NCBI GenBank assembly: GCA_965637545.1 | Contig: OZ281497.1 | Coordinates: 9,114,001-9,178,000, forward strand | Direction: 5' to 3' | Length of the DNA stretch: 64,000 bases | From: Phallusia mammillata | Taxonomy: Eukaryota | Shown: one piece after another, positions 55,701-58,700 of the stretch | Layout: each line of letters opens with the position of its first letter | Position numbering within the stretch: the first letter of the stretch is position 1 | The notes under the pieces: model-generated | What the model saw: the letters and a program-made list of their open reading frames with translations, nothing else | What the model was told of the DNA's origin: nothing | Database searches by the model: none | Translations under genes and position numbers: made by a program

Positions 55701-58700
55701 GTCTAGTTTTTGAAATGACACAAGTCAAAATGTAAATCGGAATTTGGGCACCGTCACATAATTGGTCGCGAAGAGCAGAGAGAAAGGTAGGCAGCTGCAT
55801 CAATTCTACACTAGTTTGACGAGTTTGGACACAAACAAACAGAAATTTGACGAAAATTTATTTATCAGTGTTTTCAATGCAGCTGTCTTAGAAAAGGATC
55901 AAATTGTGCAGGAAGGGGCTGCCGCTAGTTATTTCCAGGACTTGTGATTGAGACACTATGCTAATACCATCCCAGTTGCTAGGAAAAAAGCACCCATGTT
56001 TCACCTGAAGATCAAGCGGTCCCGCACAATTTGTTGAGGCTCGCAAGTAGCGCAGATTTCCAATGCACTGCAGTTTTTGTTCGCAAAGCGCGCAGCTGCT
56101 CGATATGGACTCAATTGAGATGCATCAAAACCCAAGGGTTTAACATGTTACAAAACAAGTTTTTTATGTCCAAATTCAAGTTTTGCAGTTAGAAAAGTTA
56201 TCCCATGAATGTTTTTTTCAATTTGTTACATACACAAGTTTTTGTAACCCCCTGGAAACATACTGTACCGCTGACTTATACGCTGTAGAATAATGCTGTC
56301 ATTGGGCAATTGCGGCAAGATCCAAGTTACTCATTTCGAAGCCTGTGTCCTCATCCCAGACGACTGGAGAAGAATCGTTCACACCTTTTGCGCACAGTTA
56401 ACACAAAAAGCGCAAAAGAAAGAAACAAAATTGAACATGTGTTGTTAGTTTTGTGATTTTAAATGCTTTTCTTCTTAACCATTGCCTATCTTTTTACCAA
56501 AATTTACACTAGAGAGCTTGAACTAGAAGAAAAATCAGTTCTTACATTTTTCCATAAAACATAATTCTTCCCCCGTTTCAAGCTACAGAGTTATTCACAG
56601 ACTGCATTTATGATTTGAAACTACATTTATGAAGAATTGCTTTTCAAATTTCATGTGGCTATTTTTGGCACACACATACGTTTTGCTGCAACAAAGTTGG
56701 ATGTTTCCTCAGTTGGCATTTACAATACAAATCAATGTATATACATGTCCAATGTAAAATTCATACATATCCAAGTTCTATGGTCCACTATACTATTCCA
56801 GTATTATAAAACTGACTGCGGAAACACCACAATAAAGATAGTTTGAAGATGAAACCACAACAGAGACAACAGCAGTGCACAGTTTCGTGAATGTTAAAGC
56901 ACAAAGCTCAACCGAAATTGATCATAAAAATTTCAAAACAAGTTTGGAAACCATTCGAAACATTTCAGAAACACATTTACAGAAAAATAGTTCACATGTG
57001 CGTTTAAGCTTGTTGTCTGTGTCGGCCTACGCAATTTAGCTGGACACACCCTTTATTAATACAACACGTTTAATGCACTTGTTTAGGCTTTTTGGGCAGT
57101 GAATTAGCTGCATTGCAAGGTAAAGACAGCAATGCAACTAAGAGGCCTAGCCTTTCAAAGAAGGTCAAATTGTCGCAAAATGCAGCGTTTAACATTAGGG
57201 TTATGTCAAAATCCAAAGTCGCATATGCGCAGCTAAGCAGCAGGCAGCATGTTTGCCCTATATGTCAAGCATAGTCATTTTATTTGCTACAAAGGACATT
57301 TATGTGTGACAATTAGGGCAAACAGTGCAATCGCAATTGGGTAGCGCGGAACAGCATTTCATTTTGGAAATGTAATGCTGCCACCAAGGCAGGTCAATTG
57401 GCCTGTTCATTTTTTAACCTGGAGACAAATATGTATGTGTGTGCAAATTCTCGCTAATGGAGAAACATTTGAACTGGAGTTGAAATGATTTGTTAAATGT
57501 CCTCTAAATGCAGCCTGTGCCTCCACAACAGAGCAACAAGAGAAATTTTGATTTAACATTTCTTGGACCAGTGCATTTTTTAGAAATTGGTTTTAAAAGC
57601 TCTGTTGTGTGAAGTAACTCTGCTTCTAAGGATAAAGTTAACATCACTATCCACTAAAAATGGCCTACACCAATATGTAAATCAGTGGGTACGTGCACAA
57701 ACACCACAACATGCAAGGGTACCTTTGCTTCTTCTAGCCTGCCTAAAGCTTTCAACAAGTTTCCAAGATCACTTCTGACACAATAAAGGTCCTTAAAAAC
57801 AAGATTCTTGTTAAATAATTTGTCTAACACACAAACTACAAAAACTCTTTTTTAATTTTTAAGCTAGAAGATTATTTGCGCCTCAGCCTAACCAGTAGTA
57901 GAATTTGAAAGAAAATGTTACATGACACAGTATGAAATTCAATGTGGTGTGAGGACACTTGCATCAACCTTATTACAGACTGATTTATGTCCGCAAAATT
58001 TAAGATTAAGAAATATTGATGTACAGCAAACAAGCAACAGCAGTGACAACTTACTGGGTTTATCTGTAGAGCAGAAAAATACGCATGAACTGCACCCTCC
58101 AAATCTCCGGCTGTAACAAGGGCTGCTGCCAAATTGATGTACCCATCAATGAAGTCTGGTTTCAACCTAACTGCATGTCTGTAATAAAAGAATCATCAAA
58201 ATTATTTTCTGCACACTGTCACAAGCAACCATACTAGTTAAAATTTGTAAATATCAAATTTTGAAATAATTTATAGCTGATGTTTTACCTGTAATGATCA
58301 AGTGCCTCTTGTAGTTGCCCCCTTTCTTTGTAAACATTTCCCAAATTTGAATATGCCTCAGCTAACATTGGGTTGGTTTTAATGGCGTGTTTTGAAAAGT
58401 ATGCCGACCTAAAATTGAAGTTTTTATTACAGATGTCCTTAGTGCAAGCATTAAAATTAATTGAGTGAAAAACATACTTTTCCAAGCGCCGGCACTGAAA
58501 ATGAATTGAGCTTAGCAAAAGCAGAACTCCAGTGTTGTCAGGTTCCTGTTGCCACAACTGCATACAGTGTCTTTCAGCATTTTCATAATCACCTGCTTGG
58601 TATTCACGATGTGCTAGTTCTGCAAGGGCTAAAAGAAAACCAGCCATTTAGATCCTACACAACTTTAACATGAAATACACATAATGCCAAAATTAATAAA

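Follow-up and report, generated by a model that had tools for sequence, protein, structure and literature searches.

Mammalian cells keep the level of O-linked N-acetylglucosamine (O-GlcNAc) steady by detaining intron 4 of the gene for O-GlcNAc transferase (OGT) via a decoy exon (PMC12017769, PMC5588854, PMC6097662). In human, this detained intron responds to O-GlcNAc, and the decoy exon within it measures 143-153 nucleotides (nt), has two 3' and two 5' splice sites, and leads to a premature stop when it is included (PMC12017769, PMC5588854, PMC6097662). An intronic splicing silencer that overlaps the decoy exon in vertebrates is conserved to jawless fish and was reported to be absent in Drosophila (PMC5588854). 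Recursive-splicing exons (RS-exons) follow a scheme of their own, being either removed via a rebuilt donor or retained with a stop (Blazquez 2018, PMC6224609). For tunicates, our literature search returned no work dealing with decoy exons or intron retention in OGT. Here we describe a conserved island in intron 4 of OGT in the sea squirt Phallusia mammillata, within a stretch of 64,000 nt (assembly GCA_965637545.1, contig OZ281497.1, forward-strand positions 9,114,001 to 9,178,000; hereafter the window, numbered from its first letter). Based on its sequence features, we predict that the island holds a conserved non-coding poison or decoy cassette exon with a recursive-type junction, about 95-121 nt long and running on the minus strand from either 56384 or 56363 to either 56269 or 56264. 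This cassette would control the productive splicing of OGT, and we give this reading a probability of roughly 0.6.

OGT intron 4 and the taxa compared

The open reading frame (ORF) map places the OGT gene on the minus strand, from about 58647 to 49775. Human OGT is matched by a catalytic exon of 71 amino acids (aa; E 8e-35, PDB search), and exon 5 aligns with residues 178-216 of the full-length human OGT chain (PDB numbering). Two exons and the intron between them concern us here:

57723..57791, minus strand: OGT exon 4, ending ...GRLEEAK in phase 0 with the donor AAG|GTACCC; protein identity is 100% in L003-L009
55504..57722, minus strand: OGT intron 4, 2219 nt, between GRLEEAK and ACYLKAIE
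55387..55503, minus strand: OGT exon 5, starting in phase 0 with ACYLKAIE and ending ...HHFEK

The initial annotation of this stretch had already placed the end of exon 4 at 57723 (phase 0) and the start of exon 5 at 55503, and we confirm both boundaries.

Intron 4 lies directly after GRLEEAK, as does the detained OGT intron 4 of vertebrates, and both the PDB numbering and a fish transcript (L011, below) confirm this placement. The position is old, since protein matches from many animals in an exon-level search run out of intron sequence directly into ACYLKAIE. A transcript contig of 7.9 kb (L011; Logan run SRR11587735) keeps only intron 4 (3486 nt, 991-4476), with all other introns spliced, and thus clearly illustrates the known retained-intron isoform. 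We take it for fish because its intron 4 aligns with a carp intron over about 2 kb (71%). As the two fish introns 4 (L011 and L012) align along about 2 kb, the decoy within them could not be localised for a comparison of its grammar. A distant, GC-rich and intron-poor OGT gene (L010), whose catalytic part consists of ORFs of 314 and 166 aa, has an intron of 1439 nt at the same position (10260-11698), next to an intron 3 of about 50 nt.

Six taxa were compared, namely the window, L005, L003/L004, L009, L002 and L013, and those other than the window are metagenome contigs. L003-L009 were found by word search with the exon-3 ORF, as fragments with a lineage-specific exon-3 protein signature, and L002 and L013 were added to them. 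L002 came, together with L001, from a word search with the exon-5 ORF, in which matches come from all animals and are not sortable by relatedness. L005-L008 are four JGI metagenomes of one species and L003/L004 are two near-identical copies from ENA ERZ25067590; the remaining sources are ENA ERZ21736675 (L009), SRR10746996 (L002) and ENA ERZ17089476 (L013). Protein identity is 0.89-0.96 among the window, L005, L003/L004 and L009, and 0.85-0.87 against fish. Identity at four-fold degenerate sites is only 0.29-0.39 between taxa, no higher than against fish, and synonymous sites among these relatives are saturated. Two of the loci also contain what are probably mobile elements: intron 4 of L001 (5.5 kb) contains ORFs of 130-200 aa (L001:1862-3584), and reverse-transcriptase ORFs lie upstream of the OGT gene at L009:1684-7137.

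In the four taxa whose introns could be mapped, intron 4 is the longest mapped OGT intron. It measures 2219 nt in the window, where the others reach at most 649 nt, and 2263 nt in L005, where the next is 975 nt; it is 2710 nt long in L003 and 2135 nt in L009. Its ends are weak. We scored splice sites with donor and acceptor weight matrices built from 49 other introns of the window OGT gene and three related genes, and for the window, L005, L003, L009 and L002 every one of the nine intron-4 end sites that could be mapped falls below the median of real sites. The donors (GTACCC, GTATTG, GTACCT and similar) lie at the 10th-49th percentile and the purine-rich acceptors at the 0th-41st percentile, the exception being the acceptor of L013 at the 53rd percentile. 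About 9 of the 49 mapped introns have GTT donors (GTTAGT, GTTGGT, GTTTGT etc.), unusually many in comparison with vertebrates, and some of these may be mapping errors of the automatic procedure.

The conserved island and its splice signals

Intron 4 contains a single block that is common to the window and its saturated relatives:

56255..56472, minus strand: conserved intronic island, the sole such block of intron 4

Outside the exons, the window and L005 match at a single place in the whole 9-kb gene, 56465-56375. A sensitive alignment of the two delimits an island at 56472-56260 with 68% identity over 223 nt (blastn E 2.6e-19), and the local alignment of the islands has z = 34 against shuffles. 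A profile built from L003 and L009, with the window left out, has one match in the whole 64-kb window, at 56463-56255 (E 5.6e-5). In the other direction, a profile from the window and L005 recovers the corresponding place in L009 (E 3e-3) and in L013 (E 5e-9). The island of L002 is too diverged for profiles, and its motifs are those of the other taxa, with order and spacing unchanged. Pairwise alignments of the window island to L003, L009 and L002 are weak alone (z 1.1-2.5), and the case for these three rests on the cross-validated profiles and on a unique 10-mer at the right distance, described below.

The island is not coding and has no evident RNA structure. No frame is open in all taxa across the cassette on either strand, which rules out a coding exon on either strand. 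RNAalifold gives a consensus fold of 0 pairs for the island; intron 4 contains no Rfam family, and no repeats were found in it. What the island does contain, in the order of transcription, is a set of splicing signals:

56444..56448, minus strand: branch-site consensus CTAAC, 64 nt upstream of acceptor 1 with no intervening AG
56405..56430, minus strand: pyrimidine tract between branch site and acceptor 1
56383..56386, minus strand: AG|GT junction (acceptor 1, exon start 56384), with AGGT kept in 6/6 taxa
56364..56365, minus strand: second acceptor AG (acceptor 2, exon start 56363), kept in 6/6 taxa
56260..56269, minus strand: invariant GGTACAGTAT with two overlapping donors, consensus GGTAYAGTAT
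56248..56252, minus strand: G-run just downstream of the donors
56264..56384, minus strand: proposed non-coding cassette, 116/121 nt from acceptor 1 and 95/100 nt from acceptor 2

A CTAAY motif stands 50-68 nt before the AG|GT junction in all six taxa, as TACTAAC in L013. The zone between branch site and junction is free of AG in four of them (window, L003, L009 and L002); L005 has an AG at -10, and L013 has one at -19 and another at -13. The branch-like TTAAC at 56401-56397, to which the initial annotation had pointed, is only partly kept, and the canonical motif is this CTAAY upstream of the pyrimidine tract.

The AGGT of acceptor 1 is the one junction without variation across the six taxa. 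Ligation to exon 4 would restore a donor here, AAG|GTGTGA, with an in-frame TGA at 56381-56379. As a donor, the GT of this junction scores 6.8 bits, which corresponds to the 35th percentile of real donors and to rank 4 among the 125 GTs of intron 4. The rebuilt donor has the same 6.8 bits in L005 and reaches 8.9 bits in L003 (AAG|GTATGA), and the unligated junction of L002 scores 7.1 bits. In these four taxa (window, L005, L003 and L002; 35th-73rd percentile) it scores at least as high as the tandem donors downstream, so that a second step could excise the cassette. Acceptor 2 follows 13-27 nt after the junction, as CAG in five taxa and TCAG in L013, and has a purine-rich stretch behind it; its matrix score in the window is -0.4.

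The two donors overlap in a 10-mer that lies 110-119 nt after the junction. D1 is G|GTACAG (last exon base 56269) and D2 is ACA|GTATGT (last exon base 56264), with ranks 10 and 6, respectively, among the 125 intronic GTs, so that three of the ten best donor-like GTs in intron 4 cluster in this 120-nt stretch. The pattern GGTAYAGTAT occurs once in the 64-kb window, where 0.08 matches are expected, and exactly once in each of L002-L009 and L013, always at 110-119 nt past the junction. In five of the six taxa the donors have a GGGG no more than about 25 nt away, and L013 has none. G-runs are the kind of motif that aids weak donors.

The length of the cassette is 95-121 nt for the window, lies between 85 and 124 nt for the other taxa, and is not kept modulo 3. 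Every combination of acceptor and donor in the six taxa (24/24) leads to a premature stop, which is weak evidence by itself because a random cassette would usually give a stop too. After acceptor 1, the stop is immediate in three taxa (GTG TGA or GTA TGA).

The initial annotation had proposed that decoy or decay-coupled splice sites lie in this part of intron 4. All letters it quoted are present on the minus strand: the pyrimidine tract (56430-56405), TTAAC, the acceptors AAAG| (56384) and TTCTTCTCCAG| (56363), and the donors TGA|GTAACT (56331/56330) and CAG|GTGAAA (56005/56004). Its stops are also correct, namely GTG TGA after acceptor 1 and a stop-ended peptide after acceptor 2, and its description of acceptor 1 as a recursive-like AG|GT junction holds. 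The general idea, a decoy or decay-coupled cassette in the OGT intron equivalent to the detained one of vertebrates, is strongly backed by the conservation in six taxa. Its exon model is wrong in the choice of donor: both acceptors fall inside the only conserved island, and neither of the two donors is conserved. CAG|GTGAAA at 56004 lies, like the CpG patches, outside any conserved block.

A few other features of the gene and the window deserve mention. Within 20 nt after the apparent start codon at 58647 there is an acceptor-like sequence, tttcttttag|CCCTTGCAG (58610-58650, minus strand), so that OGT may in truth begin with an exon further upstream or at an acceptor for a spliced leader. A hairpin-like sequence at 50014-50101 (minus strand), inside the intron that separates the last two OGT exons (50275-49924), weakly matches microRNA precursor models of Rfam (mir-2567, E 0.018), with a score far under the gathering score. 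Elsewhere in the window, and unrelated to OGT, are an open frame of 822 aa (752-3217, minus strand) and one of 264 aa with a cytochrome-P450-like tail (8648-9439, minus strand).

Proposed action of the cassette and competing explanations

Transcript fragments provide a view of intron 4 in the relatives. In two fragments that bear the tunicate signature, introns 1-3 have been spliced out and the sequence continues from exon 4 into intron 4. For one of them (P0121) there is just a protein, listed in a catalogue of marine transcripts; the other (P0242, contig L017, JGI 3300018952) reads AAG|GTAATT and then at least 309 nt of intron 4. They are the only spliced N-terminal fragments with the tunicate signature that the searches returned, and the contigs of P0125 (L014-L016) are too short to reach intron 4.

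The searches also returned 119 N-terminal OGT fragments from many animals, such as fish, birds, arthropods, flatworms and nematodes (98-313 aa; P0241-P0359), 98 of which end shortly past exon 4, and only 4 of the 119 continue into exon 5. The tail of the 98 starts with V in 63 cases. A V at this place corresponds to GTN, and these 63 fragments therefore read into intron 4. The other 35 start with another residue, which suggests that an alternative exon is spliced after exon 4. Unproductive splicing at OGT intron 4 may be widespread in animals, although the search was restricted to a range of lengths that favours fragments of this kind.

Our reading of the island as a poison or decoy cassette builds on the position of the intron, the conservation, the signal grammar, the stops and the read-through into the intron in the fragments of two relatives. 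The spliceosome would define the cassette via the CTAAC branch site, the pyrimidine tract, the two alternative acceptors and the two overlapping weak donors. If these sites engaged the weak ends of the intron and the reaction was not completed, intron 4 would be detained, as has been proposed for the human decoy. If exon 4 was instead ligated to acceptor 1, the donor AAG|GTGTGA would be rebuilt. Use of this rebuilt donor would remove the cassette in a second, recursive step and give normal mRNA. Use of the downstream donors would keep the cassette, which then reads GTG TGA, and would send the mRNA to nonsense-mediated decay. By either route, the element would set the amount of productive OGT mRNA, and it would be the tunicate counterpart of the O-GlcNAc-responsive decoy exon of vertebrates. 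Both the actual use of the sites and the control of the choice by O-GlcNAc are inferred.

Several observations weigh against this reading. The relatives are presumed to be tunicates based on the shared exon-3 protein signature. The profile and motif searches did not find the island in the more distant loci L001 and L010. Among the database matches from the P0121 word search for truncated transcripts, there is no tunicate fragment that carries the cassette or ends in it. The rebuilt donor is weak in two of the six taxa (GTTTTG in L009 and GTTGCG in L013; 6th percentile). Acceptor 1 scores below every real acceptor on the local matrix (-4.7 to 2.1; -4.7 in the window), which reflects a pyrimidine tract displaced 18-50 nt upstream and an A at position -3. 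Finally, a profile derived from the six taxa shows no similarity of the island to the two fish introns 4 (nhmmer, E >0.2, with the pyrimidine tract as the only match), and sequence homology with the vertebrate element was thus not found.

The island could also be a plain recursive splice site, by which a long intron is removed constitutively in two steps, with the downstream donors serving only to define the site and OGT output left uncontrolled. The invariance of AGGT and the percentiles that the junction reaches as a donor in four taxa are what such a site would predict. Its intron is only about 2.2 kb long, however, and L009 and L013 have a poor rebuilt donor. Moreover, conservation is not confined to the junction, as the approximately 115 nt between junction and donors are also conserved (window, L005 and L013). 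The weak intron ends and the two fragments reading into the intron argue for control rather than a mere aid to splicing, and we consider a plain recursive site unlikely.

Conservation alone is silent on the level at which an element acts, and the island might be a DNA-level intronic enhancer or a binding platform in which splice-like motifs are incidental. It is quite unlikely that this is so. What is conserved is precisely the set of strand-specific splicing signals, correctly ordered and spaced (a branch site and a pyrimidine tract, then AG, AG, GT, GT and a G-run), and we found neither a conserved fold nor an Rfam family.

A further possibility is that the island is an alternative 5' exon, with spliced-leader acceptors or an internal promoter, whose donors join exon 5 to give an N-terminally shortened OGT. 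Many ascidian mRNAs are trans-spliced, and the mitochondrial OGT isoform of mammals starts in intron 4. In a mammal-like match (P0033), a frame stays open from within intron 4 through to exon 5, and the grammar of acceptors and donors would also suit an exon of the 5' untranslated region. However, all three ATGs of the window island meet stops and none opens into exon 5, which has no methionine of its own; an open frame from the island into exon 5, as in the mitochondrial isoform, was rejected on these grounds. Neither peptides nor lengths are conserved, and a leader acceptor needs no invariant GT directly after it. Together, these points make an alternative 5' exon very unlikely.

Least probable is a poison exon of 33 nt (or 54 nt) exactly as the initial annotation drew it: its letters and in-frame stops are present, but its donor (56330..56333, minus strand: TGA|GTAACT, present, weak, unconserved and excluded from the element) scores 0.6 bits (4th percentile of real donors, 41st of the 125 GTs in intron 4), is replaced by TGC ATGGAA in L005 and by a gap in L003, and lies 62-67 nt short of the conserved pair GCG|GTACA|GTATGT (56269|56268 and 56264|56263), and the 33-nt exon does not score above chance, since 144 AG..GT pairs at 25-200 nt in the same intron score equal or better.

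Relation to known systems and implications

The closest described system is the decoy exon and silencer of vertebrate OGT (Park 2017, PMC5588854; Parra 2018, PMC6097662; Govindan and Conrad 2025, PMC12017769). The gene and the intron position are the same, and the intron is long in both. The putative tunicate cassette resembles the vertebrate one in lacking annotation, in its size of about 100-150 nt and in combining two alternative acceptors with two close weak donors; each gives a premature stop on inclusion, and each is conserved well above the other introns of the gene. It is shorter than the vertebrate exon (95-121 against 143-153 nt), has a spacing of 13-27 nt between its acceptors where the vertebrate exon has 3, and of 5 nt between its donors where the vertebrate exon has 7. 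Its first acceptor is an invariant AG|GT junction, a feature that is not reported for the vertebrate element in these three papers. In human cells, the dependence of retention on the element and the response to O-GlcNAc have been demonstrated; for the tunicate element both are predictions.

With RS-exons (PMC6224609), the candidate cassette shares an acceptor directly followed by GT, which would rebuild a donor after ligation to the upstream exon. It also shares a downstream donor for exon definition (here GGTAYAGTAT, in six taxa) and a stop if the cassette is kept. As for their setting, known RS-exons lie mostly in very long introns. The tunicate intron is 2.2 kb long, and the rebuilt donor is weak in two of the six taxa. 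The conserved poison or decoy exons of ARGLU1, SF3B1 and DDX39B (PMC6097662) are similar in being deeply conserved non-coding cassettes with a premature stop and several competing splice sites in a homeostatic gene. They are documented by junction reads and reporter assays, and the tunicate cassette by conservation and signal grammar.

It is possible, though doubtful at this point, that control of intron 4 by a decoy or poison cassette is ancestral to tunicates and vertebrates, or perhaps older, given that N-terminal OGT fragments of arthropods and other animals in the database mostly end directly behind exon 4 as well. In that case the tunicate switch may be a recursive-type exon in which a rebuilt donor is set against tandem donors 116-121 nt further on, with the balance set by O-GlcNAc.

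If the cassette acts as we propose, sea squirts would have a counterpart of about 220 nt to the vertebrate element, and the feedback would either date to the common ancestor of tunicates and vertebrates or represent a striking convergence. The comparison would pare the element down to a minimal grammar common to both groups, namely tandem weak sites and a long distance from branch site to acceptor, and sea squirts would provide a system whose embryos readily take up minigenes by electroporation. As the invariant AG|GT junction suggests, decoy exons and recursive splicing may be connected, and this link could be tested in vertebrates.

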